From Tubulanus polymorphus (taxonomy: Eukaryota; Animalia; Nemertea), in NCBI RefSeq assembly GCF_964204645.1, contig NW_027437430.1:1-64000 (forward strand): 64,000 nucleotides of DNA. The letters run 5' to 3'. Of this stretch, positions 7 through 16,144 are shown piece after piece. Every line of letters begins with the position of its first letter. The first letter of the stretch is position 1. The translations under genes were made by a program, and so were the position numbers. Under the pieces are notes generated by a model, which ran no database searches, was not told where the DNA came from, and saw only the letters and a list, made by a program, of their open reading frames with translations.

Positions 7-50
7 GCAAAAGGTTGAAAGCCTGTTTTGGTCGATGGCGAGTGACGTCA
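7..50 (+). repeat. Left terminal inverted repeat (44 bp)
   Basis: Reverse complement of 12066-12109 except position 40 vs 12076. Confidence 0.95.
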
Positions 51-709
51 CTAGTACAAATTCCGAGCGGTTCGAATCCCACAATACGCCAAAATCACTA
101 CGGCCGCTCTGAGCGCACATCGCATTTCAACGTTGCCGTTTAATAATTGTAAAATAACTAATAATAGTTTAAGTTTTATAAGGGTTAGAAGTACATTGTA
201 TTTACTGCTAGTGTATGTATATATCATGTACGGTTGCGAGAAATCCCTGCCCTAGTTAAACAGTAAGTCCACTAAATCTTTAAATTTTAAGTTGTTTAAT
301 GAAACTATTATTGTTTTAAATTGTTAAAACTGCAAACTATGGTTGTCGAAGATGCACCTTCTTCACATCCTTTGAAATCCTAGATAGCATCGCTGTCGGC
401 AAAGACCTTCAGGTCTGTCTTCAACGGCACATCGCTTTGGAACAAGCGACTACTGTGTTATCAAATCTGAACTAGGTAAAAAAATGTTCCCCAAAAATAA
501 AGACAAGTAAACGGATTAATTTGAGGTTTGAATGTTTTTGTTTATTTGTTGGTTCAAATCGAACCCTCGTCATCCTGATCTCCATAAATCTAAGAAAAGT
601 ATTCGCACACTTAAAACAATAAAATACGAGCAATAAGCAATAACATCAGACTGGAGTAAGTAACTTTACTTAATTCACAGATACAATCCTACACAAAACA
701 ATAGCTATT

Positions 710-951
710 CAGTGGCGGATCCACCCCTCTATTTTTACCGATGTAGCCGCAAATCTATGCGTTACTGAGTAAAAACCGAATGAAATCTTTCTATTAAGTA
801 ATGCTCAGAATGCACCTGCTTGCATCTATTTTTCCAAAAAATTTTTAGGAAGGGTCTTCGCGTTATCGGTGCTTGCTCTGGAATGGCTTACAGCCATCTG
901 TTGTTGCTTTCATTTGCCCCCCCCCCCTTCAAAATGCTGGATCCGCCCCTG
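710..951. mobile_element. Small non-autonomous element (MITE, hAT-like ends) nested in the large transposon
   Basis: Ends CAGTGGCGGATCCA ... TGGATCCGCCCCTG (13/14 inverted match); related ends at ~10885-11145 and ~26206-26337; no clear TSD. Confidence 0.6.
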
Positions 952-1084
952 AGTGCAGACAAAATGATCGACAAAGACATACAGAACTCTAAAACAACAG
1001 TTAACAATTTAAGCAACGATAGACAAAACAGATAGCTGATTACTTTACAAACCTGTTGTCAGAACCTTAATTATTTTTACATGT

Positions 1085-1965
1085 ACATACAGAGGACTGT
1101 TAACAATTCAACCAATGAAATTGCGATAGAGATACAGAACATACAGCTTTAACAGTAAACAATGCAACCAATGAAATTGCGATAGAGATACAGAACATAC
1201 AGCTTTAACAGTAAACCATGCAACCAATGAATTGCGATTAACTAAGACCTACGAGCAATTATCAAGTTTGATAATTGCTCGTAGCTAAGACATACAGGAC
1301 AAACAGGACTAACTTAATTGCGATAGACATACAGGACATACAGGATTAACAGTAGACAATTCAACCAACGAATTGCGATTAACTAAGACATACAGGACTA
1401 AACCACAGGACATACAGGACTAACAGTAGACAATTCAACAACCAATGAATTGCGATTAACTAAGACATACAGGACATACAGGACTAACTTAATTGCGATA
1501 GACATACAGGACTAACAGTAAACAATGCAACCAATGAATTGCGATCGCGATCACAAAGACATACAGGACAAAACCACAGGACATACAGGACTAACAGTAG
1601 ACAATTCATTAACCAATGAATTGCGATTATTTAAGAAATACAGGACTAACTTAATTGCGATAGACATACAGGACATACAGGATTAACAGTAGACAATTCA
1701 ACCAACGAATTGCGATTAACTAAGACATACAGGACTAAACCACAGGACATACAGGACTAACAGTAGACAATTCAACAACCAATGAATTGCGATTAACTAA
1801 GACATACAGGACATACAGGACTAACTTAATTGCGATAGACATACAGGACTAACAGTAAACAATGCAACCAATGAATTGCGATCGCGATCACAAAGACATA
1901 CAGGACAAACAGGAATAAACCACAGTAAATTGCGATAAAAAAGACATACAGGACTAACTGCAGTA
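1085..1965. repeat. Subterminal complex tandem repeat array
   Basis: Many GACATACAGGAC / CAACCAATGAATTGCGAT modules; a ~270-bp block (1303-1572) is repeated at 1640-1909 (period 337). Confidence 0.92.
1242..1291. mobile_element. 36-bp palindromic insert with 7-bp TSD (probable transposon excision footprint)
   Basis: CTAAGAC | CTACGAGCAATTATCAA-GT-TTGATAATTGCTCGTAG | CTAAGAC; interrupts the repeat unit TTAACTAAGACATACAGG, which is uninterrupted in sister units. Confidence 0.8.
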
Positions 1966-2736
1966 AATATATAGGGCCTTAGGAATGCAAAATTCATTCA
2001 TTTTGTCATTTGTAAACATTCCACAACTTATTTCATTATGTCATTTCCAGTTTTCAAAGGGAATTTTCTTAACTTCAGATGCCTCGAGGACATAAACATA
2101 TAGAAAGATCTGTCCCAAAAAAATGTCAAGTGTCTTTCATAGTGCAATGGGCCCTGGTTTCCACGTTTATATATCACATATAAAATTCTACAGAAACAAT
2201 CAATGAATAAGTGAAAATTTACGAATAACAAACAAGACATTCAAGCAGTTGAGTAAGTTAAAATGGGACCAATCTATATATATTATATATGGATTATACA
2301 ATTTAATCAGGGACAGCCTTGAACCGAGGTTGATGTGTCCATACACTCTCTTCATACACTCTCTGAACATGCATGTATGTATACTGCTGCCAATTGATGA
2401 TAAGTCAAGGATGTTGAAGTTCTAGACATGGTCAGAATCATCCAGAGACATCGGCACGCATCACAATAACTGATGATTTTGCAGTAACCTGTAACATAAA
2501 AAATCAAGCGGTAATCTATTCACAAAATATATTTTCCTGAAAGAAAAAACCTGAAATAGAGCACTATAAACACCAGTGCATATACATCGCTTCTTAACCT
2601 TATATATAATCGAGTAAATATATAGGTGACTAAGTGACGGTCATTATAGGCTTCTACGTTCACCATGGGAAATGAAAATATTTCTAACGTCAGGGATTCA
2701 TTCGAAACCCGATCAATAATATTCTATACAAACTAT

Positions 2737-5700
2737 TTAGGAAATCGGGTCACAATGAAAACAAAACCACCTGATATGTTCAGGAGGAGCCTCATTGATT
2801 GGAGCACATTTCCAATGATACCATCTATGGCAATTATCACATTCAATTGAGAATGTGGACTTTTTCTTAGGATTAGCATTGCAGTTTTTGTGGCAGACAG
2901 GGCAGGTTTCAGCAACTAACCGAGAAGGGGTTTTTTCAACTTTTGATGACAAAAGATTATCTAGTTTCAATTTTGCTAGGTTTTGGAGGCCTGCATTTCC
3001 AGGTTGATCTATAAGAATTTCTAATTCTTTTTCAGAATTGGAATTATTGATTTCTGTAATAGGAGAACTGTTGAGATAATCATCTCTATTATTATAATCG
3101 ATTACAATAGATTTTTTCTTATGATGATTATGTTCAATACGAATGTGCTTTTGAAGGAATGTTTCACTTGCATATGAATTAATAACCCCATCTGCCCAAC
3201 AAATAGCACATGAGATAGGTTTCAAAGATGAATGAGAAGTGGATATGTGCCTATCTAGTTCCCTGCGACATGAACAAAGATATGGAGGATTTATTTTGTC
3301 TTTAATACAAAAGGAACAGACAATACTTTTTTCAAATAAAACAGACTTCGAGTCATTTTTAACAACTGGTATTGACTTAATATCTTTTGGTTTGGTATCT
3401 TTTGATTTTTTTGGTAAGGATGATTTATTCTGACTTAAAATATCTGCTGAAAATTCGATATCATTGCCAGGATCTGGATCAGTGGAGTCTATGGTTTCAA
3501 TTTCTGATATTTTAGCTTTTTTACCTAGTTTGATAGCAGCATTTTCAACCATAGCAGAAAAGGATACACCTCTGTTAGCAGGTCTAATTATCTTTCGCCC
3601 TCCGTGTCTTGCATTCTCAGCATCTTTAGGCATTGTAACCTTAGGACAGTAAGGGTCTATCACTTCAAGTTCAGGAAGGTTTATGGCAACCTGATTGTCC
3701 TTGATTGGACCCTCAGCACGCCTATGAGCCATATTGTGAGGTTGTCGTTTGGCAGGTCGTCCGCTTATTAACTTAATTCCACAGTGGCTTTCATTATGTA
3801 AAATACTTAGAATGTGCCCTTTCCGAGCAGCATTGATATCATTCGAGCTAGCAATGTGGGAATGATCTTTTAACTTATCAATGAGGGTAGATGAAACAGA
3901 AATATTTTGTCGAGTAAAATTGTAAGTTGGCAGAGGCTCCACAATGTGGAATTTATATGCATCAATTAAAGCCTTCGTTGTGGTTATATTGTTTTTTTGG
4001 GCAAAACAGGCAAAAAGATGTTTGCAAAAATATGGTTGTCCAATCATTATAAAAGCTTCACAAGTACATATACCTAGTTTCAAATTGATTAAATGGCAAT
4101 TACCATCTACGTATGAAAGACAATTTTCAGGAACGATTGTAATAACGTAATTGAATAAGATACGACTGGATATTGAATCTAAATTTCCTATGTACCTTCG
4201 GCATTTTTTTGAAATGTCATATGAATGTTCCTCGGATATTGATACTTTATCGGGGAATCTTTCTTCTAAAACATCAAGCTGATTGAATGTATATTGAGTA
4301 TCACCATTGAAAAAATTATCATTATCTTCTAACCTATTTAAGTTCTTTCGTGAAGAACTCTTCACAACAAACCAATTAGTTTCTTCATCATATTTTAAAA
4401 TCTCATTATTCTGTAATAAATCAAAGGCTCTTTTGCAACACTTTTCTATCTTTTCAAGGTGACGTATATTCTTAACTCGTTGGTCAAGTTGCTTAAATTG
4501 GAGATTGTTCATATTTGTCGCTTTGATCTCATCATTAAAAACATTTTCAAACAGTAATCGTACAAAAGATGATATCAGTTTATTTAGGTGTCCACTTAAG
4601 TAGACATCATCTATTTGTTTGAATTTGCGCTCAGTAATATTATCAGTTAATAGCAAAGGGTTATTTCTGTTAGATTGGTCTGACTGATAAATTGATTCAG
4701 CATTGAATGCATCAGACCAAATTTGGGAATTAAACCAATTCTTCTTTAGGTAATCAATAAATAATGTTTTTGTATCTTGCGACATAAGGTCTAAAGAAAT
4801 ATCATTCTCAATAAAACTAATAAATGAATTGGCTATATCAGTTCTAGAGGAAGCATCCCATGATCTCATAATGCATTTGAAACCAGTTTCTAGAGGCTTG
4901 CAAAATAAGCGAAGTTCTTGATTTTCATTCATGAAGCGACGAATACACTGCAGGACATGAAAATTACATAGTACTGATTTAAGATTATTGTCAGATGCTC
5001 CTTGCTTTAGACTTGCATCTTTATCATGTTGTACAAAAGGACAAAATCTAGATGTTGATGAACATGGCTTGATTCTGAAAAAACCATTGCCATCATTAAA
5101 TATATAGAATTCAGATGGATGATTACATTTTTCGTCTTTACATGGTGTATTGGCTAGAACTAACTGGATGGTAGTTGCATGAGTAGCCCCCCCTTCATCA
5201 CTACTAATTGATGCAGCAGCAATACGTCCTTCATTTTTGTTGTCTGCAAAAGTTACAAATGAAGTTTTGAATTTCCACGAATTGAAATCATGTTTCACGT
5301 CAATACCAATGACAGATTGTCCAAAGTTGGATAAATGTTCCAGAGAACGAGGATCAGAGAGAATAATGTGATAATTACGTTTGAGTGTGGCATCCCCTCG
5401 TTGAAATAAAAGGACAGATTCATAGTTACCCTCTAATAATTTTTCAGTATTTCTCCAATCAGAACTTAGAATAGGTATTTCGTCTTGAGATTTCATATGT
5501 AATTTTATCGAAGATTTATCAATATATTTCAATCTATTTGAAATTTGATCTAGGGTATGGTCATGACCGGCGCCATCATTTACATTTGATACATGAAGGT
5601 TATTGTGAGCATTGGTGGCAGAAAGAACCTTCATTGCTGTGGCTTTCATCATGACTCTATTTTCATCCCATCTATCTCTAGTAGATAAATTAGGTCGCTT

Positions 5701-8484
5701 TTTAATTTGTAAAGGAATATTGTCATGATATTGACCATTAAGTGGTTTGCTGAAGATTCTCCACTTGGATAAATCAGTACTAAATAATACAAGTTTTGTT
5801 GCCCAATAACACATAAAATGAGGGTGAATTAATTTTTTTGGCTCAAACTGCTGCCTTAACTTCACAGGACGATCACGTTTATTCTTCAGCTTATAGTTGT
5901 AACAGTTGGAACAAAGTGTTTCACCATCAGCATTTTTCCTCCATTTGTTAGACATGGTAATGGAGCAATGAATACATTGTTTATCATTTAAAACAACGTC
6001 AATTTGACATGAGGGACAATTAGTGATGTTACTGGACATATTCAACTTTGAAAGATAATATCCACATGATGATTTACAAACTGAAGACTTTGACGAACAT
6101 TTTATGAGCATTTCTGCAGCCACAAATTGAGAAGTATCCTCAACAATTGGCTCAATAAATTCAAATTTATTATCTAATCTATGGGTTTGCCAATTCTTTT
6201 TTAATGTTAAGGAAGCTTTCATCGTTGTCTGGTTACCAACAAATGAAGGCCGCACATTCTTATGCAGACGAACTGTTTTTGTAAAATCAAAAGTGAATCT
6301 ATCGAAATAATATTTTGTGTCAGCACCAGTCATTACTTCCCCATTTTCAACCCATTCATCACTAAGTGGATTCTGGTTGTTGAGGTATTTCTTGATAGTG
6401 TCAATGGCTACCTGGTCATTTGTACCTTGGTCTGTACAATGAAAACTTTTATACTTCGTCTTACTGCCAGTTGAATGAAAAGCAACTTCAAGATAATGCT
6501 TTCCTCTCCTGATGCGATGGGAGATAGTAGTTTTAGAACCATTAATATGGGAAGTTAATGGTTCAGCTGAATTTAGAGTTAATGAGGATTGAGGATTCAA
6601 AATTGAGGATGTAGATTCAGGTGTAGATTCATTATTCGAAATTGGTGTAGATTCAGGTGTAGATTTAATAGTCAAAATTGGTGCAGATTCACTATTCGAA
6701 ATTGGTGTAGATTCATTAGTCAAAATTGGTGCAGATTCACTATTCGAAATTGGTGTTGATTCAGGTGTTGATTCATTAGTCAAAATTGGTGCAGATTCAC
6801 TATTCGAAATTGGTGTTGATTCATTAGTCAAAATTGCTGCAGATTCATAATTCGAAATTGGTGTAGATTCAAGTGTTGATTCATTATTCAAAATTGGTGT
6901 AGATTTAGATTTGGCTGTAGTTAAGACTGATTTGCTTTTTTTAGGGGCAATATAAGAGTCTGACATCTTTAATTCAGAACTAGCTAGTGTATTATTTGAC
7001 TCAGTTGATCGTTTATGTCTCTGTCTGCGAGATAATCGTGATATCTTAGAGAAAGTAGTACTATTAGCAGTAGGTTGAGATGACTTTGAGAAGAGTTGAG
7101 TAATATCAATTAGATGTTTCATAAGCCAATTAATCAATATCAATCTAACAAAATCAGAATAGTTAGAAATGTTCTTAAGATAAGATAATTCATTGGGAGA
7201 TGAAAATACACTTGAAATATCCTTTTCATAATAGGTTGCAATGCAAGCACCAATTAATGTAGCAGGGCCACAGACAGATGAACATGATTGGAGTGGGTAA
7301 TAACTAGTACAATTATTACTACATACATGCACTGAATTTTCAGTAACAAAATGAGGATCATGGAGGTGGATATAAACAGGATCAGGGCAATTCAAACCTT
7401 TCAAAACAGATCTTAAATGATTTTTAAATTCCCTTGGACAATCCCATGCTAGTGTATCAGCATAACACAGTTTGTTACTTTTTGGGTAAAAAACTGCTAG
7501 TGCATAATGATTGGCAACAACATGTCCATAAGAATTTAGAAATACGAAATCGTTTTGGGTGCCAACATGCAGGAAAAAAATTAGTTTATCACAACTTATG
7601 AGTGGATTAGGACCGAATCTTTTATATAAATTTGAAACATATTTCTTAGCATCAAATGTAAGTGGCATCATAAATGCATGAATATTACAGTACTGTTCAT
7701 TTATCATAGATGCAAAAGCATTTAACACAGATCCTTCAAACCATTTTTGATTAGTCATCGTCTGAAGTTCTGATACAGATACGCTATTATTATTACCAAC
7801 TGGAAATTGTTGAGAGGGTTTTAAGGAAAAGAGCATATTTGAAAATGCTTGAATCTGTTCCCAATCGACTGAATCAGTGGGGCTTAAAGGCTTACTATTT
7901 ACCCAAAGATTCATGGCAAAAAGATCTTGTTGTTTGGTTTTAGCATAATGTAAGAAAAGAAACCTATTAATCTGATCAATAGAATAGCAGCCTGTATCGA
8001 GTCTCACATGGATATTAATGGAAGGGTCACGGACAATCCTTGACTGCATCTGTGCTTTTATGTCCTCCAACTGATTTTTGTGGGGCATAGTGGGGGCATC
8101 ATCAGCCAAATGACATGAATTAGACATGTCACAAATTCTGAATGACGTGACCTTTGATGGCATAACAGGAGGAATTTTCAAAAACTGATAGTCATTGAGG
8201 CACATTTCTGTTGGATTGTAACTAAAATTTCTTCTACATACATGTTCATCATCAGAATCATTCTCATCACTATCATCAATTATGATTGGTTCGATACCTC
8301 CACCACCTGTGATACTTAGCTGTTTTTTGTTTTCCATCCAGCTATCTTCCTGCATCTTTAATCTTTCTATCCTTTCTTTCGAACTATCTTCCTGCATCTT
8401 TTCTGCTTCCTCTATCGTTCCTTCCGAGAAATTGTCACAAGCCGCGTCCTTTCCTTCTTCCTCCATTGTCCGCCTGAAATACAC
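2737..8484 (-). CDS. Multidomain MULE-like transposase, main exon: Ulp1/SENP (C48) protease, S/T/P repeats, GATA finger, DDE core, SWIM, 2x C2H2, PHD
   Basis: 1915-codon open frame. Protease: W(F)EGSVLNAF, NHYALAV, YADT, LQSCSSVCG. GATA: C-x2-C-x17-C-x2-C plus basic tail. DDE: IGIDVKH, QHDKD, CNFH, TDNITE. SWIM: CTC-x11-CKH. PHD: CPVC...CDNCHRWYHWKC...WFCFHC. Confidence 0.9.
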   Translation of the reverse strand: MYFRRTMEEEGKDAACDNFSEGTIEEAEKMQEDSSKERIERLKMQEDSWMENKKQLSITGGGGIEPIIIDDSDENDSDDEHVCRRNFSYNPTEMCLNDYQFLKIPPVMPSKVTSFRICDMSNSCHLADDAPTMPHKNQLEDIKAQMQSRIVRDPSINIHVRLDTGCYSIDQINRFLFLHYAKTKQQDLFAMNLWVNSKPLSPTDSVDWEQIQAFSNMLFSLKPSQQFPVGNNNSVSVSELQTMTNQKWFEGSVLNAFASMINEQYCNIHAFMMPLTFDAKKYVSNLYKRFGPNPLISCDKLIFFLHVGTQNDFVFLNSYGHVVANHYALAVFYPKSNKLCYADTLAWDCPREFKNHLRSVLKGLNCPDPVYIHLHDPHFVTENSVHVCSNNCTSYYPLQSCSSVCGPATLIGACIATYYEKDISSVFSSPNELSYLKNISNYSDFVRLILINWLMKHLIDITQLFSKSSQPTANSTTFSKISRLSRRQRHKRSTESNNTLASSELKMSDSYIAPKKSKSVLTTAKSKSTPILNNESTLESTPISNYESAAILTNESTPISNSESAPILTNESTPESTPISNSESAPILTNESTPISNSESAPILTIKSTPESTPISNNESTPESTSSILNPQSSLTLNSAEPLTSHINGSKTTISHRIRRGKHYLEVAFHSTGSKTKYKSFHCTDQGTNDQVAIDTIKKYLNNQNPLSDEWVENGEVMTGADTKYYFDRFTFDFTKTVRLHKNVRPSFVGNQTTMKASLTLKKNWQTHRLDNKFEFIEPIVEDTSQFVAAEMLIKCSSKSSVCKSSCGYYLSKLNMSSNITNCPSCQIDVVLNDKQCIHCSITMSNKWRKNADGETLCSNCYNYKLKNKRDRPVKLRQQFEPKKLIHPHFMCYWATKLVLFSTDLSKWRIFSKPLNGQYHDNIPLQIKKRPNLSTRDRWDENRVMMKATAMKVLSATNAHNNLHVSNVNDGAGHDHTLDQISNRLKYIDKSSIKLHMKSQDEIPILSSDWRNTEKLLEGNYESVLLFQRGDATLKRNYHIILSDPRSLEHLSNFGQSVIGIDVKHDFNSWKFKTSFVTFADNKNEGRIAAASISSDEGGATHATTIQLVLANTPCKDEKCNHPSEFYIFNDGNGFFRIKPCSSTSRFCPFVQHDKDASLKQGASDNNLKSVLCNFHVLQCIRRFMNENQELRLFCKPLETGFKCIMRSWDASSRTDIANSFISFIENDISLDLMSQDTKTLFIDYLKKNWFNSQIWSDAFNAESIYQSDQSNRNNPLLLTDNITERKFKQIDDVYLSGHLNKLISSFVRLLFENVFNDEIKATNMNNLQFKQLDQRVKNIRHLEKIEKCCKRAFDLLQNNEILKYDEETNWFVVKSSSRKNLNRLEDNDNFFNGDTQYTFNQLDVLEERFPDKVSISEEHSYDISKKCRRYIGNLDSISSRILFNYVITIVPENCLSYVDGNCHLINLKLGICTCEAFIMIGQPYFCKHLFACFAQKNNITTTKALIDAYKFHIVEPLPTYNFTRQNISVSSTLIDKLKDHSHIASSNDINAARKGHILSILHNESHCGIKLISGRPAKRQPHNMAHRRAEGPIKDNQVAINLPELEVIDPYCPKVTMPKDAENARHGGRKIIRPANRGVSFSAMVENAAIKLGKKAKISEIETIDSTDPDPGNDIEFSADILSQNKSSLPKKSKDTKPKDIKSIPVVKNDSKSVLFEKSIVCSFCIKDKINPPYLCSCRRELDRHISTSHSSLKPISCAICWADGVINSYASETFLQKHIRIEHNHHKKKSIVIDYNNRDDYLNSSPITEINNSNSEKELEILIDQPGNAGLQNLAKLKLDNLLSSKVEKTPSRLVAETCPVCHKNCNANPKKKSTFSIECDNCHRWYHWKCAPINEAPPEHIRWFCFHCDPIS
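6600..6910 (-). repeat. Coding minisatellite (48/60-bp units) giving ESTPISNSESAPILTN repeats
   Basis: Near-identical CAAAATTGGTGCAGATTCACTATTCGAAATTGGTG units at 6673, 6721 and 6781, with more divergent flanking units; all length variation is in multiples of 3. Confidence 0.92.
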
Positions 8485-8634
8485 ATTATCAACTCACTTT
8501 TTTTAGACATATGAATAGATAGAGTATGAAATTACCCATATAGGCCTAACATAAAACATGGGTATCTCTGAGTCATTTGCATTAAGTCATTTAGATTTGT
8601 AGGTACTAAATTAATTGAATTATGTTGTACTTAC

Positions 8635-10430
8635 ATTTCAGTATGGTTTAAACTAACATGGTCTAGAAGATCTTTCCAATTGGTGAATTCAACTCCGCAA
8701 AAACATGTCGAGTCAGCAGGATCCGTCTGTGGATGAATAACCTAATGTGGAAGAGCACATTAATCTGTTTTTGCTTCAACATCTAAGCAAAAATAACAAA
8801 AATGAACCCGCATCTCGCAGAAAGGGCATCAAACTTACATGTTCCACTGACTTCCTTTTTCTGTTAAATCTTTTAGTATTGTGACAACTTCTATTGTAGC
8901 ATCCCTGAATATGAAAACAAAGCTTTACAGCATAAATCATACCAATACCAATGAATTTCTATAATTTCATTTCGAGAAACATATTACTCACGTTCTTAGT
9001 CTGATAAAAAGGAGTAAATAATTGAGGCTTTAAACAAATAGCAACACCAGCCACATCAATTTTAGTCATGTACTGGAAAAAAAAGACAGATTTGTGCATG
9101 CACAGCCTTTAGGTAATTGTGAAATAAAAGTGACCAAACTAATATTAAATCATAAGTTCTTGAGATGATATGTACCTGGTCGAATGTGAAAAAGGCTCTT
9201 TGATCTTCACAACAGAATTGTTTCCTTGTATGATGCGCAACGTCAAAACTGCTATACTGGATTGAAGGATACAAAAAACTGTTAAAATATATCTAACTTT
9301 ATAAAGATAAATCACGTACAAATCACTTAGGAAAACAACTTTACCACTATTGTTGAATCATCCCATGCTCTTGCTTGATCATCCTTCAATTTGTTTTTTG
9401 CTATCAGCTATCAATATGATTCATTAATTCAATGCAAGGATTTTGAATAAAGTGGTTTCGTATTCAAGTTATAAAAACTAATTGCAAATCATTCATTTTC
9501 TAGGATATCAATGCTAAATGATTACCTTTCGTCGATGGACTGCTCTACTTCTTTGCATCTTTTCAATCTCATATGGAAAGTATTGAGGGCACCTGATTAA
9601 GAATCATTCATTATTTCCAGTACAATCATAAAATTTATGTAGTTTGCATACCTGGTAATTGGATAAAATAATGCAATTCTACGTACATTTCATCTTCATT
9701 TTTCAATAGCAGTAGTTCCATTATCCTGTTATTTATGAACTGATTTCCCTTACGGCTGGGGTGTAACAAGTCAGTCCTAGATCACAAAATTTAGAAAAAA
9801 ACAAGTTAGTTTAAATCGCGAAAAAATGCACATAACCTACTGGGCTTATTAAAATTAAACGATTACTTACGGTGAAAGGAGATCTCTTGAGAAGTGAAAA
9901 TCAACGAACTTTACACCAAGTGTAAAGCATTCGCGGTGCAGCATTTCATTGTAATGAAATATTTTTGTGTCAGCATCGAAACTTTAAAAAAGAAAGAAAT
10001 TTAAAAATCATTACATCGATCATAAATATAGTACTTCAAGAAAAATCTATTCTTGATACTTACTCATCACATCGAGGAAAAAGAGCTGGTACAATGATGG
10101 TCCCAGTACATTTATAGAGCAACAATCGAATTAATTCAACGTGTCTTCGCAGAACAATCTCAAGCGGGACATCACGCGTCATATTATTTGTTCCAACATG
10201 GACGATTAGTTGTTCCACATTCAGCATCTTCACCTTTTTCAATTCTGTAATATACAACTAATCAGTAACCCAATGAAAATGAACAATATAAATCAGTACT
10301 GAACCGAGAAATTACCTTCCATCAATGTTTCAATGGTTCCTCCGGGGCACACGATCCTTGTCCATTCAAATAAGCCTACACCATCTAGCCCAGCATACTT
10401 TAAAATGCTGTCTGCTACGAGACCAATACG
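8635..10430 (-). CDS. Ten upstream exons encoding an SGNH/GDSL esterase domain and a C2H2-like finger, predicted to splice in frame to the transposase exon
   Basis: Exons 10430-10316, 10244-10064, 9981-9871, 9776-9687, 9592-9526, 9407-9345, 9256-9176, 9072-8992, 8904-8839, 8741-8635, all GT-AG with matching phases. SGNH blocks: LVADSI, CPGGT, HVGTNN, DLLHP. Finger: CFCGVEFTNWKDLLDHVSLNH. The last exon (phase 2) joins the acceptor at 8473 in frame. Confidence 0.78.
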
Positions 10431-10884
10431 CTACAAAAAAGATTATTTGTCAGTCTCAGGCCAATATCACAGGGAGGTGTGAGAGAGCACACTGGTTACT
10501 GTAAGACCCTACTACATGCAAAAGAAGTGACACATATATGTATATCAATGTGATAGAATTGATTGAAAAAATTGTGCATAATAGTAGCTAGTGCCCAAAA
10601 ATAGAACACAGTGTTATTGAAGTGAAAATTTCTAAAATCCTCTGAAGCGGTGCTTATTTGGTAGCTACATGGGTATTCTAATTGAATAAGCATAAAGATA
10701 AGCGTGCACACACAGTAGCCTATGCATAAACAAGGGCCAGTTTCACCTTCACCTAAAAGTCCTGCAGTGTGAAGACTAACTTGTTCACCTAAACCACCTC
10801 TACCAGGCTGTGGAAGGCCTAACATCAGGCACTAAATTAAAAGATTCCTCTAAATCAAATTATCTATAAACATCCTCTTAATTG

Positions 10885-11145
10885 CAGGCAGACTGATTCA
10901 GGGAGGGGTGCAGCCCAAAATAGGGCATACATATCAGTATCATATATAATTAAAAATCAAAAGGGCACCAGATCATCAGAAAACATAATACCTATATTTT
11001 GGAAGTAGGCCTACAGAGAACATGTTTTGGAATATAAGCTTTTTAAAAATACTTGTTGATATTTTTAATTTTTCCTTTAAATTTCATTGCGACTTAAAAG
11101 TTTTAAGGGGTGTACACCCCTGTATACTCTCCTGATCTGCCCCTG
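10885..11145. mobile_element. Degenerate MITE related to 710-951
   Basis: Starts CAGGCAGACTGATTCAGGGAGGGG and ends CCTGATCTGCCCCTG, resembling the GGATCCGCCCCTG terminus. Confidence 0.4.
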
Positions 11146-12065
11146 AATTGCCACTTAACAAAATTTCTCAGCTTAATTGTTGGCTAACTAGCTCAGTGAA
11201 ACTGGGACCAGACCTAATGCATACACCCTCAGTGGCCAGGGCCAGGATTAAACAGTTAGGCTACGTATATAAATAAAGGAATGAAAAGTACTTATCCTGA
11301 AATTGGTTAGGCTATCTATCTGCAACAAGAAATACATTTTCATTGACTCTGAATACAGGGAACTACCATTCTTCTGTTTCGAGGCCTTAAAATTTATTGT
11401 TTATTTTTTGTTGCTGGATTTGGAATGGTTGTTGGAATATTTAAGGCCTAGTAGGTGGTGACTGTGTACGGGCAACATAGGCCTATACCCAGTGGCATGG
11501 CAATGGCATGCCACTGGGTACCCACTACTGCACTATAGTATACTGCCTACGGCTACTGCGACTGGTGGTTCGGTTGGCAGAAATTACTTGTTAACATGGG
11601 GGGGGGGGGAGGGGGGAAGTAAGCGTGGATGAAGACAAATTAATTTAGCCGAGTAAGTAGCAAGCAAGTAAAGTAGTGGCAGTACAGTAGGCCTAGCGAC
11701 AATGTGAGTGTGGTGGTAACGTGGCCGTGGTGGCAATAACAAGACTCCAAAACTGGCAAAAGCCAAAATTAAAAAGCCCTGCCGCCGCGCGGTCGCGACG
11801 CCTCGCCTGCACCACCGTGTACGATCCTCGCGGCGTTCACCAGTGTTACCCAGTGAGTTTTTTATAATCTTGCAATCTACCTCTTTTTTCAAACCAATAT
11901 TCCCACCAACTGGTCCGGAGACAAGCTTAACACGTTCGGAAAACATGATTCACAATCTTTTAATCAACAGCCAGCAAGAATACACTTGACAGAAAATTCA
12001 AATTCAGCGGTTAACCGTTAAAAGTGAGTTGTTTAGCTGTGGGAGTAACAAAAAGGCGATCTTGA

Positions 12066-12109
12066 TGACGTCACTAGCCATCGACCAAAACAGGCTTTCA
12101 ACCTTTTGC
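12066..12109 (-). repeat. Right terminal inverted repeat (44 bp)
   Basis: TGACGTCACTAGCCATCGACCAAAACAGGCTTTCAACCTTTTGC, inverted copy of 7-50. Confidence 0.95.
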
Positions 12110-12569
12110 CGCAAGCCGAGTGATGTTCCTCCTTAAAACAGTCTATATTTACACCTTTAATCACCAATGATCGTTAAGGTGATTATTGCAATTTAATCCT
12201 GTTCCATTGTTCTATATTTAGATGTTTGTTTTTACGTTCATCCATCCGTGAAATAAACACAATACATACAAAACTGCCGGCATGTAAATCGAATATATCA
12301 ATCAAAATTAAATCAAGTCCATGATGTTTTATTGCTAAATGTAAATAAACCTTTTATTCGAATGCAACAGTTTTTTTATGTCGGTTTTTTATGAAATAAG
12401 TATTCAAGACACACACACATATGTGATTATACAATTTGATTAATATTGGTTGACAGTTTTCTGATTGATAATTCCAACAACCGTCTTTGAATTTTAAGAG
12501 GCCTCTACTATAAGTGTCATTCAGTATGTTCTGTTTGTTTATTTCAGTAGTCAGTATAGATAGAGATCT

Positions 12570-15500
12570 ATGTATGTAAAGATGGCAGAAGCTGATGATT
12601 CAGTTAAATTGCCACTTACTGTGGATAAGATCGATATTAAATCTGCTACCAATAACCAGCATACGACAGTAGATACAAGCAGTTCAGGGGATTCTCCTAT
12701 ACCGCAGTCGCCGGCTGTTGGTCCATCTCCTCACGTGTTTGGTGGATCTCCTGGCTCGGTTGATCCTGTTCACGATTTACCACAAGAATTACTGAACGCG
12801 GGATGGAGACGATTCTGGAGTAAACGCGAAGGACAGCCTTATTTCTTCAATAAAATTACGAATCAGTCTTTATGGGAAATGCCAACGATTGATGGGAGAC
12901 CCGCAAAGGTATAGAAATTGTCTTTGAATCTTCCACTCTCAGCTTACTTCATTCAACTGAACTGACTACATTTTAGACTAAAATATCAATGACTTTATTG
13001 CAGCACGATCATCTGAGCGATCCACTAGGTATTCAGACATCTCCACCGGCGCAGTTAGTTCCAGGTTCAACACCAGTTGGTGAGAAAAGAAGAGCAAGCA
13101 CCGACCATGGAGGCAGTCCCCCTAAACGTCCTGCCCAAAGTATTGGGTAAGCCTTGTTATAATTGAATGTTCGTGAATGAAGATTGATAAAATTGAGTTA
13201 TTTCCAGGGTTCTTAATGATCAGGGAGTTACTAAATTGTTTCAACTTGATTTTCAGACCATTCTGGAATTTTGAATTACACAGCAATGTTATTATCTACG
13301 AACAACCGATAAAAGCGATTCCACCGCCTCATCCAGATATAGAAAATATGCGATTGCAAAGTATGGTGAAATTACGACAACAGTATCAAGAACTTTGCCA
13401 TTCAAGAGAAGGTAAATTTAAACTGTTGTTGCTCGCTTTCAAAAGCTACCATGGGTTGGCTTCTGATTACTTCTCTGCAAACTTCTGGCAAAATATTCCT
13501 GTTATCGGACAATTTGCTTATTATACCCAAACTATAGGCTTAGTACCTTAGATATTTTTGATATCCGAGTGGTGCCATCTGAGGAGCTAGCTGGCCAATA
13601 AAAGAGATTTTTGACAATTTTGAGAATTTTATTGGGTTTCTTAGGAATTGAAGCTCCGAAAGAATCTTTCAACCGATGGTTAATCGAAAGACAAATAATC
13701 AATAAAGATGAAGACTACATGTTCCCTAGTGACTGCGTACCTGAAATCTCTCAGTCAATGTACCGCGAGATTATGAATGATATACCGATCAAACTTGTGA
13801 AACCGAAATATTCCATGGACGCTCGCAGGCAACTGTTGAAATACGCGGAGGCAGCAAAAACGATGGTTGAATCACGGAATTCAACTCCGGAAAGTCGGAA
13901 AATAGTCAAATGGAACGCTGAAGATACGTTTATATGGTTACGCAAACAATCAAATGCTTCATATGAAGACTACCTTGTAAGTGTGATTTCATTCCTGGAA
14001 AATTCGCATTCTTCATACTCTGGGAAGATCGTTGAAAAAGATTTAAAAATAATATTTTTCAGGAAAGGTTGGCTCACTTGAAACGGCAGTGCCAGCCTCA
14101 TTTAACAGAAACGGCTAAAACATCAGTGGAAGGAATCTGCAGTAAAGTCTATCATTTCTCGTGTGAATACGCGAAGAAAATACGAGAAAAACATTGGGAA
14201 TTATTATCACAGCACAACATAAAACGTAAGTGCAAATTCATACATCAACGATTGAAGTTCCAATATAATTCAGGTGTGCGAAAAAGCTTTCATTTATACC
14301 TATTTTACTTGATTATTTATTGTTATTCTATCTAGCACCTGATAGTGAAAGTATTCCACCTATTAGGAAGGTAATGTGTTACCCTGTACTGCTATCAGTG
14401 CCTTGTCCGCGGTTACCATCACCTGAAATACAGTTCACCAATGAAGGAGTTACATTACGCTATAAATCGGAAACCATCAGAATAAATACGGATCATTTTC
14501 AAAAATTAGTAAGTAGTGATTTTTTGAATTATACGGACACGTAACATCGGATAAAAACGTAATCCTTGTCCGTTCATTCGTAGGAACAATTGTACAGATG
14601 GAATTGTAAAGATGATCCCAGATTCGATAATTATCTCGCTAGATGTTGGTGCCTGATGAAACGATATCAGGTACAAAAAAGAAACTTTTATGAAAAATTG
14701 TTCTAATTCAGTGAATATTCGGATTTAATGTAAGACTTGTTTTCTTTCAATGTTTTAGTCGATGTTTGGTATCGGTAATGAAGGAGTGAGTTTACAAGGA
14801 GCTTTGCCCGTGGCTGTATTCGAATGTTTGCACAGATTATTCGGTGTTACGTTTGAGTGTTTCGCATCTCCTTTGAATTGCTACTTCAAACAATTCTGTT
14901 CTGCATTCCCAGATACTGACGGTTATTTCGGATCTCGAGGGTCAGTATTGAAGAAGAATTCACAAATAGATTAAACATCTAAATCGATTTAGATTTTTGA
15001 TTTTTTTCTGAAACTAGATAGATCATTGAACTCTGAATTAATACCAGCTGTTCATCTTTTAGATCACTGCTGAAATTTCAACCAGTCAGTGGTTCATTTG
15101 AAGCTAATCCTCCATTCTGCGAAGAACTGATGGAAACAATGGTCGACCATTTCGAAGTATGTTTATGCAATTATTACTATAATAATTAATCCTATAATCA
15201 AAATGCTTTTATTTATCGAAATGATTGAATTTTGCTTGTAGAGTTTATTACTGGAATCGAGTGAACCGTTGTCATTTATCGTATGTATTCCCGAATGGAG
15301 GGATCCACCGACAGAAGCTCTTATTAGATTAGAATCTAGTCGATTTAACCGTAAACAATTAGTCATCCCTCCATTTGAACATGAATACAGACATGGCTTC
15401 CAACATATCGTAGCAAAGTAAGTTTTTGATTTTACCAGAAAATGATTTCCGGTTGTGAAGTTTTTACCGGGAAAAAGACCGCTATATTAAAATTTTTTCT

Positions 15501-15646
15501 GTAGGAATGAAACGAATATTAAAGCAATGCACGGAACTTTGATAATCTTCCTACAAAATGAAGCTGGCCTTTCTAAGTGGGAACCTACAGCGGATAGACT
15601 TCATGAACTACGGTTAGCATTTCGACCTAAAGACAGAGCTCATTGA
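12570..15646 (+). CDS. PCIF1: mRNA cap-specific adenosine N6-methyltransferase (PCIF1/CAPAM), multi-exon
   Basis: WW domain ([32 protein letters not shown]), FECFASPLN, catalytic EANPPF (~15100), [11 protein letters not shown]; short GT-AG introns; stop TGA 15644-15646; start ATG 12570 or 12582. Confidence 0.93.
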
Positions 15647-16144
15647 TGTGAATTCTGCTAAATTGATCGTTGTTCAGATTATCTATTTTACTCGTTTGCG
15701 CTAGTGCATGACATGACAGATATACAGAACACTAGCTCCGCATTGTTTCATAAAAAGACGAATAACTTGTGACGTGTAAATTACATAAAGCTAATTGGGA
15801 AATAAAATGATTGCAGTATTACAGCTCATAATTTTGCACGCCATCATTAAAAATGTAAGCATAATTATTATTGATACATGAGCACATGTATATGAGCAGC
15901 GTTATGATTACTGATATTTGAATATGTCCATGTCTATTACATTGGTTATCGTTACTGTAAATTAACAAAAGATGTAAATATTACATTTAGTGGGTTTAGA
16001 CATAACAATTGATACTGCCTCATAAAATGGCAGATTACTGGAAATAAGGGATATTTGAACCTGAACAGTTTCGATAAATGTAGTCACCTGTCATTGTTAT
16101 GTAGAAATAATCTGTGGTTATTTGAATGAATGACTAAATGACTA

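Follow-up and report, generated by a model that had tools for sequence, protein, structure and literature searches.

A spliced SGNH esterase joined in frame to the transposase of a putative Rehavkus-like transposon in the nemertean Tubulanus polymorphus

The DNA that was analysed consists of positions 1 to 64,000 of contig NW_027437430.1 from the Tubulanus polymorphus (Nemertea) assembly GCF_964204645.1, and this whole stretch of 64,000 nucleotides (nt) is referred to as the window. The subject of this work is a minus-strand gene near the beginning of the window that lies between two terminal inverted repeats (TIRs). The gene would be a single unit of about 12 coding exons that encodes one very large protein. 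The predicted order of the parts in that protein is an SGNH esterase, a zinc-finger linker, an Ulp1-like region, a Ser/Thr repeat, a GATA-like finger, a DDE core with a SWIM-like motif, C2H2-like fingers, and a PHD finger. The best explanation of the locus, which we consider likely when it is taken as a whole, is that window positions 7-12109 represent one intact copy of a young, multi-copy, Rehavkus-like cut-and-paste transposon of ~12.1 kb, where the esterase is spliced in frame to the transposase and the frame is read from the ATG at 11946. The features of the locus and the evidence for each of them are shown in Table 1.

Table 1. Features of the element in the window, listed in the direction of the gene.
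Feature	Position	Strand	Evidence
5'-side (of gene) TIR arm	12066..12109	.	44 nt, 98% complementary to 7-50; same end in other copies
Proposed first coding exon (exon 0): ATG 11946, 22 codons MFSERVKLVSGPVGGNIGLKKE, phase 0, donor GAG|GTAGAT	11881..11946	-	C7-family conservation, RefSeq P0080
Alternative 5' exon A, 28 nt	11292..11319	-	X4 joint 10831|11292; acceptor 11319 inferred from loose end
Alternative 5' exon B, 79 nt, out-of-frame ATG at 10825	10753..10831	-	X4 joints 10831|11292, 10430|10753
Esterase exon 1: strand beta-1, block I (ADS, nucleophile Ser), block II (PGG)	10316..10430	-	Joints 10430|10753, 10244|10316; 4c1b and 32 relatives aligned
Esterase exon 2: block III (GTNN)	10064..10244	-	X4 joints, alignment, C7-family comparison
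Esterase exon 3	9871..9981	-	X4 joints, RefSeq model, C7-family comparison
Esterase exon 4: block V (DLLH, Asp and His)	9687..9776	-	X4 joints, RefSeq model, alignments
Linker exon 5 (CPQYFPYE...)	9526..9592	-	X4 joints; kept in C7 family
Linker exon 6	9345..9407	-	X4 joints
Linker exon 7, acceptor 9256	9176..9256	-	X4 joint 9256|9345
Linker exon 8, contains RefSeq isoform X2 start (MTKIDVAG)	8992..9072	-	X4 joints, RefSeq models
Linker exon 9	8839..8904	-	X4 joints
Linker exon 10, CxC...HxxxxH zinc-finger-like motif (kept in C7 family)	8635..8741	-	X4 joint to 8473
Terminal 5.7-kb exon, transposase body	2737..8473	-	Open frame, RefSeq models
Ulp1/SENP-like protease region	7075..7842	-	Language-model features only: 26/30 nearest clusters Peptidase_C48, score 0.94
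In-frame Ser/Thr/Pro-rich tandem repeats (24/48/108-nt units)	6620..6905	-	Repeat units and translation
GATA-type zinc finger, weak match	5896..5976	-	PF00320 17.7 bits, below cut-off 26.8
Candidate DDE core: D in GIDVKHDF, D in HDKD, C(2)H motif (CNFH), E 33-36 residues on	4912..5307	-	Motif positions by eye
SWIM-like CxC...CxH motif	4018..4068	-	Invariant in four homologues; weak PF04434 matches in homologues
C-terminal PHD finger	2752..2904	-	PF00628 24.2 bits, cut-off 24
Subterminal minisatellites (56-, 77-, about 170-bp units), between stop codon and 3' TIR	1102..1882	.	Tandem-repeat units seen
3'-side (of gene) TIR arm	7..50	.	Inverted-repeat match to 12066-12109

Four public Tubulanus polymorphus runs (X1 to X4) that cover the stretch were compared over window positions 7000-12150. 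Runs X1 to X3 exhibit zero joints, which is the behaviour of DNA, and run X4 exhibits spliced contigs, which is the behaviour of RNA. Twelve GT..AG joints on the minus strand (CT..AC on the plus strand) were identified in X4 only, and these include all ten introns. A first-pass annotation, made from the sequence alone, had proposed ten small exons, which are 115, 181, 111, 90, 67, 63, 81, 81, 66, and 107 nt long. Every edge of these exons was found as a GT..AG joint in X4, and the cumulative phases recomputed with a local script (1, 2, 2, 2, 0, 0, 0, 0, 0, and 2) are identical to those proposed. The choice of the acceptor at 9256 over that at 9278 agrees with the X4 joint 9256|9345. The junction that carries the fusion, where the donor at 8635 is joined to 8473 and completes a codon, is also spliced in X4 (joint 8472|8634, cut +1), so the transcript does not stop before 8473. 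The joined frame is open for 2232 codons from 10430 to the stop at 2737. The whole chain is spanned by no single X4 contig, and the depths of the contigs cannot rank isoforms.

The joined frame from codon 37 ('ME') is identical letter for letter to RefSeq XP_074661724 (P0005; LOC141914437 isoform X1, 2196 amino acids (aa)). RefSeq models on several copies of the element carry matching junctions, and the encoded proteins are already in RefSeq where they are labelled 'uncharacterized'. The exons and junctions that had been annotated within 8473-10430 are right. The proposed start codon lies outside that interval, and a further exon at 11946-11881 and the alternative 5' exons had been overlooked.

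The joined exons restore the four SGNH blocks that had been read from the fragments; exon 1 supplies ADS and PGG, exon 2 supplies GTNN, and exon 4 supplies DLLH. RefSeq proteins of sister copies with the same exons stood in for the joined form in the domain tests. Two of them, P0004 (39.2 bits) and P0080 (35.0 bits), match PF13472 (Lipase_GDSL_2) above the cut-off of 32.9 bits. Single window exons of 38 and 59 aa gave no Pfam match because the pieces are too short. The matches among the sequences of solved structures are Oskar OSK domains and the zebrafish ZfL2-1 esterase (4c1b), which is encoded by open reading frame (ORF) 1 of a long interspersed nuclear element (LINE). The alignment with 4c1b extends over residues 7-162 of 171 and takes in blocks I, II, III, and V with the ...HVGTN[DN] and D.LHPSR.G motifs. 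The alignment of 33 domain sequences exhibits invariant S30, N80, and H163 and nearly invariant D29 and G52, and these positions are occupied by ADS, PGG, GTNN, and DLLH in the nemertean protein.

The AlphaFold model that was built from the domain alignment has a predicted local distance difference test (pLDDT) score of 84.7 and a predicted template modelling (pTM) score of 0.80. The Foldseek search with this model gave 187 PDB matches at E<=1e-3, and the best 50 of the 187 are all SGNH-fold entries. The best of these matches are GDSL lipases, PAF acetylhydrolase, TesA, and sialate O-acetylesterases, with template modelling (TM) scores of about 0.65-0.70. The assignment of the exons to SGNH hydrolases thus passed at the level of the profile, through the sister-copy proteins, and at the level of the fold. 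The model shows the domain as a bona fide three-layer alpha/beta/alpha SGNH fold with the full catalytic set. By analogy with ZfL2-1, the N-terminal domain would most likely be an active hydrolase that is lipid- or membrane-directed and that serves the element.

The same esterase-to-transposase exon structure was identified in a diverged sister family (L023, at G000:C7:9327000-9336900, referred to as the C7 family). Its amino-acid identity to the window family is 40-60%, and its TIR, at L023:8804, is related. The test for selection compared the window family with the C7 family exon by exon, with the exons kept unjoined. The proportions of non-synonymous (pN) and synonymous (pS) differences are 0.35 and 0.60 for exon 0, 0.20 and 0.57 for exon 1, 0.29 and 0.72 for exon 2, and 0.28 and 0.71 for all exons. 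The lone indel in exon 1 is 6 nt long, and every catalytic position is kept in both families. These sequence comparisons show purifying selection on the esterase exons in both of the diverged families, so the fusion is old and maintained. The two families differ at about 71% of synonymous sites and both carry the fusion, so the fusion predates their split. Non-synonymous differences are far fewer than synonymous ones, which indicates that the N-terminal exons have been translated and that the esterase has been useful to the element. The L023 copy also contains a ~1.6-kb tandem duplication, and the region matching P0005 residues 339-767 is present twice.

The bounds of the element are given by the two TIR arms. 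Two other copies of the element are flanked by perfect 9-bp target duplications (GTATCAAAC and ATTTTCAAC). The duplication of the window copy itself is unreadable because the contig begins 6 nt ahead of the TIR. The esterase stretch is present in at least 14 genomic copies of full length with 98-100% identity in the 268-Mb Tubulanus polymorphus genome, and the element is young, recently active, and probably still mobile. There is no reverse transcriptase in the element, and the esterase and the DDE-type transposase sit together inside the TIRs.

The members of the Mutator superfamily have TIRs and target duplications of 8-11 bp, typically 9 bp. The element looks most like a very divergent, Rehavkus-like member of this superfamily because of its 44-bp TIRs, 9-bp duplications, PHD finger, and minisatellites before the 3' TIR. 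The Pfam scan of the 1915-aa ORF identified the PHD finger and the weak GATA finger only, with no MULE, SWIM, or Peptidase_C48 match. The language-model features of residues 880-1560 fall into MULE/SWIM clusters with a score of 0.95 and 187 shared features. The hhalign comparison with 12 canonical Mutator-like element (MULE) ORFs from the same genome paired the second D and the C(2)H motif at P = 7e-4 with a probability of only 26%, and the comparison with untrimmed alignments matched the PHD finger alone. The partner of the esterase had been called 'the transposase' in the first-pass annotation; this designation is kept for a Mutator-superfamily, Rehavkus-like protein that is too divergent for the Pfam MULE profile.

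A homologue of the transposase part was identified in Priapulus caudatus (L026, KQ715501.1). It is about 30-44% identical and degraded, with stops and a 6-kb insertion, and its parts follow one another as they do in the element (Ulp1-like, GATA-like, core, C2H2, and PHD). The ~650 nt that were examined upstream of its big exon show no esterase exon. This homologue places the element family in at least Nemertea and Priapulida.

At the start of the gene, a TAG directly ahead of 10430 closes the frame; it is present in the genomic sequence as well as in the observed junction of exon B with 10430. The first in-frame ATG of exon 1 is found only at its final two codons ('ME'). RefSeq isoform X1 starts at this 'ME', without blocks I and II, because exon 1 opens at an acceptor after the TAG and has no earlier in-frame ATG. 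The counterpart of exon 0 in the C7 family (MFSERVQLVAGSNRSDVISRKE) also consists of 22 codons, ends in phase 0, and has the donor GAG|GTAAAT. In both families, exon 1 lies downstream of exon 0 and opens in phase 0. RefSeq XP_074649046 (P0080) begins with MFSERV...KKE|RIGLVADS, where exon 0 is joined straight to exon 1. The first beta strand of the predicted structure (residues 22-28) runs from the last residue of exon 0 into exon 1. If exon 0 joins 10430 in phase 0, the full frame from ATG 11946 would encode about 2254 aa with a complete esterase. This isoform is suggested by the comparison with the sister family and by the one gene model.

Other starts were considered. The ATG at 10825 (ORF MLGLPQ...) was rejected since it is out of frame with the observed junction and its ORF ends after 45 codons. 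It is in frame only through the unobserved acceptors at 10414 or 10411, which appear in a single Gnomon model, P0010, made on a damaged copy. RefSeq P0004, from the copy on contig 8, starts with MWPNH|IGLVADS, and the 'MWPN' sequence is absent from the window. One X4 contig joins foreign sequence that ends with ...CCCGATGTGGCCCAAC to the exon A acceptor (loose end 11319). The foreign 5' sequences are probably host exons spliced into another copy of the element to give a chimeric transcript. Another X4 contig (record 30, 2143 nt) tracks element positions 11405-12023 with 5 gaps and continues with about 1.5 kb unlike the window and then a TIR; it may come from a variant or a recombinant of the element, or from read-through that began at another place.

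Several observations weigh against an intact Rehavkus-like copy whose frame is read from ATG 11946. The listed X4 joints connect exon A to exon B and exon B to 10430, and these two exons add 107 nt and a stop so that the frame is broken. The junction 11881->10430 is not among the listed X4 joints, and unspliced X4 contigs cross 10399-10782 and 11405-12023. The RefSeq models at the window locus start at 'ME' or further downstream. The RNA data are assembled contigs from the single run X4, whose library type is not on record. For the transposase part, the direct scan of the ORF with PF10551 (MULE) gave no match even at E<=10, and none of the at least 103 PF10551 matches in the genome lies on any located copy of the element. 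The AlphaFold prediction of the transposase core, from an alignment of 4 sequences, failed with a pLDDT of 39.6. Some of the genomic PF10551 matches lie in open frames of 800-900 aa. The presence of these matches together with LINE-type SGNH ORFs indicates that canonical MULEs, LINE esterases, and the hybrid element coexist in this genome.

Transcripts that are unable to make the complete esterase clearly exist. A transcript that contains exons A and B would at best encode a protein from 'ME', without the nucleophile Ser and the oxyanion Gly. The first alternative is built on such transcripts: the esterase would be a decaying relic, the upstream codons would be a leader, and the real product would be isoform X1 (without blocks I and II) or isoform X2 (without the domain). 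Exons A and B of the listed contigs place five out-of-frame ATGs and stops before 'ME', and the NCBI pipeline picked the 'ME' and 'MTKIDVAG' starts here and for most copies. However, synonymous sites are close to saturation in the C7 family, and exons 0 and 1 keep their reading frame, length, phase, and donor there; exon 1, with the low pN and the one short indel given above, retains ADS and PGG. The predicted first beta strand comes almost wholly from exon 1 and would be missing from a protein that starts at 'ME', and RefSeq P0080 does use the in-frame start. We regard the relic as unlikely, although it is the strongest of the alternatives.

A smaller chance, which we rate as slight, is given to a domain that is translated and kept as a non-catalytic binding module in the manner of Oskar OSK. 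The best matches among the sequences of solved structures are 5a4a and 5cd9 at E of about 1e-3, and the Pfam OSK profile gives 23 bits, under its cut-off of 27. The OSK domain is not known to have the catalytic and oxyanion residues considered here; the nemertean domain has all five of these positions and they are kept in both families. The domain also aligns over its full length with the active ZfL2-1 esterase (4c1b; PMC3905857). Two adjacent genes for an esterase and a transposase, or a host esterase beside a transposon, are very improbable: short esterase-only RefSeq models (118-268 aa) do exist on other, partly truncated copies, but RNA contigs show exon 10 spliced from 8635 to 8473, both parts lie in one TIR-bounded unit that has been copied together at least 14 times, and the order of the parts is the same in the C7 family.

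The relatives of the esterase were identified with a library-wide HMMER search that gave 61 sequences. Most of the relatives outside the element are 300-600 aa long and end in an SGNH domain, which is an ORF1-like architecture, and their best E values are 1.5e-7 to 1e-3. One of the best of them, P0016, is followed on its contig by a gene for an ORF2 with APE and RVT_1, and it belongs to a LINE because this endonuclease and reverse transcriptase ORF2 lies directly downstream. Generic bacterial SGNH proteins are also among the relatives. The identity between the element esterase and its outside relatives is 25-35%. The same genome also has intronless LINE-type SGNH ORFs. These LINE-type esterases of the Tubulanus genome are 25-28% identical to the element domain and no closer than the outside ones, which excludes a recent local capture from a LINE esterase in the same genome.

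Derivation from a LINE ORF1 is a reasonable inference from these sequence relationships. The occurrence of SGNH esterases in CR1/L2 ORF1, which the first-pass annotation had given as background, is documented (PDB 4c1b, PMC3905857), and ORF1-type proteins are among the nearest outside relatives. Its statement that a cut-and-paste element had captured an esterase holds with a qualification: the fusion lies within a TIR-bounded element, and the capture would be an old event with no close donor in the genome. Two candidates for fusions elsewhere were rejected. P0047 (959 aa, with an N-terminal SGNH domain) is in fact an SGNH and Schlafen protein, and P0021 is an irrelevant bacterial multi-SGNH protein. 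Word-based searches for homologues of the whole ORF and of the esterase region found only the element's own cluster and no fusion in other species, a weak result given the limits of the tool.

Further observations concern the copies of the element and the DNA beside it. The copies at G000:C6:11903136, C2:27091512, and C2:19705081 have their left end 338 bp nearer to the esterase region than the window copy has. The probable site of this length polymorphism is either the minisatellite stretch at 1102-1882 or the Ser/Thr repeat within the reading frame at 6620-6905. Window positions 12104-16000, just past the element, are 99% identical to G000:C3:3436283-3440192. The 244-kb contig C13 may be an alternative haplotype of the C3 region with a polymorphic insertion at its broken end. 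An ORF beside the element, at 12570-12914 on the plus strand, holds a WW-domain-like stretch and is presumably the first exon of the host gene next to the insertion.

A broader reading is put forward tentatively, as one that we hold to be possible and no more probable than that. The lineage of the element may have depended for long on an active esterase of the LINE ORF1 type, and the inclusion of exons A and B may control whether the complete protein is made, a control at the level of splicing that loosely recalls the P element. The use of exon A and B inclusion as a switch is speculation. The position of the Ulp1-like region behind the esterase leads to another speculation, that the esterase might be freed by self-cleavage.

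An esterase with its catalytic residues under selection in a DNA transposon suggests a benefit that is independent of RNA or ribonucleoprotein biology. The element would then be a second, mechanistically simpler system for probing the role of the esterase. If the reading of long dependence is true, lipid or membrane chemistry would be a common requirement of class I and class II elements. The findings would also extend Rehavkus-like elements to Nemertea, and they document a transposase of about 2250 aa with an esterase, a predicted protease, and several fingers that would read chromatin or DNA. For annotation, about a dozen RefSeq 'uncharacterized protein' loci are copies of one transposon gene, and the start codons of those models are probably too far downstream.

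A search of published papers, with Repbase outside its scope, gave no report of an esterase within the transposase of a MULE, of Rehavkus, or of any other DNA transposon. The nearest precedents are the LINE ORF1 esterases, the GDSL ORFs of rotifer Terminons, and a host SGNH gene borne by a Helitron. Among known DNA transposons, the transposase part can be compared with canonical MULE/MuDR elements. Both have 9-bp target duplications and TIRs, and the element has a candidate for their second D followed by C(2)H and E, with a SWIM-like motif after the putative core. The element differs from them in its length of 12.1 kb and in a protein of about 2250 aa, which are far above the usual, and in having no PF10551 match. 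Plant KI-MULEs carry an Ulp1 protease, and the element also has a predicted Ulp1-like region.

Rehavkus (Repbase, Kapitonov and Jurka 2008) belongs to the Mutator superfamily, where it is sister to the MULEs, and it has a PHD finger, a minisatellite before the 3' TIR, and 9-bp target duplications (PMC6446971). The element has a PHD finger, minisatellites, and 9-bp target duplications as well, a likeness that was compared by description only. Rehavkus has been reported from arthropods and annelids, whereas the element is from a nemertean, and the Rehavkus literature that was found mentions no esterase, Ulp1, or GATA part.

Two other mobile elements carry related hydrolases. A platyfish Helitron is reported to have captured an SGNH hydrolase gene (PMC4021074), so that in both cases a DNA transposon carries an SGNH hydrolase sequence and multiplies it. 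The Helitron would carry a host gene as cargo, whereas the domain of the element lies inside the transposase frame and is conserved between families. Rotifer Terminons are giant retroelements with accessory GDSL esterase/lipase ORFs that were proposed to aid membrane passage (PMC6431247). Terminons and the element are alike in having an accessory GDSL esterase in a giant mobile element. Terminons are reverse-transcriptase elements, and the text consulted on them lists the esterase as an accessory function and does not mention fusion to a transposase.

The closest comparison for the domain itself is with LINEs. The ORF1 esterase of ZfL2-1 has ester-hydrolysing activity and also binds acidic phospholipids (Schneider et al. 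2013, PMC3905857), and the role of the LINE esterase in retrotransposition is unclear and a long-standing puzzle (PMC3905857, PMC13343379). The domain of the element and the esterase (ES) domain of ZfL2-1 and other CR1/L2 ORF1 proteins appear to be of the same SGNH subtype with blocks I, II, III, and V, and block I is ADS in the element and GDS in the LINE ORF1 esterase. The arrangements differ, as the LINE esterase is encoded by a separate ORF1 upstream of the reverse transcriptase. The LINE domain is C-terminal on a separate coiled-coil ORF1 protein, whereas the domain of the element is N-terminal, split by introns, and fused to the transposase.

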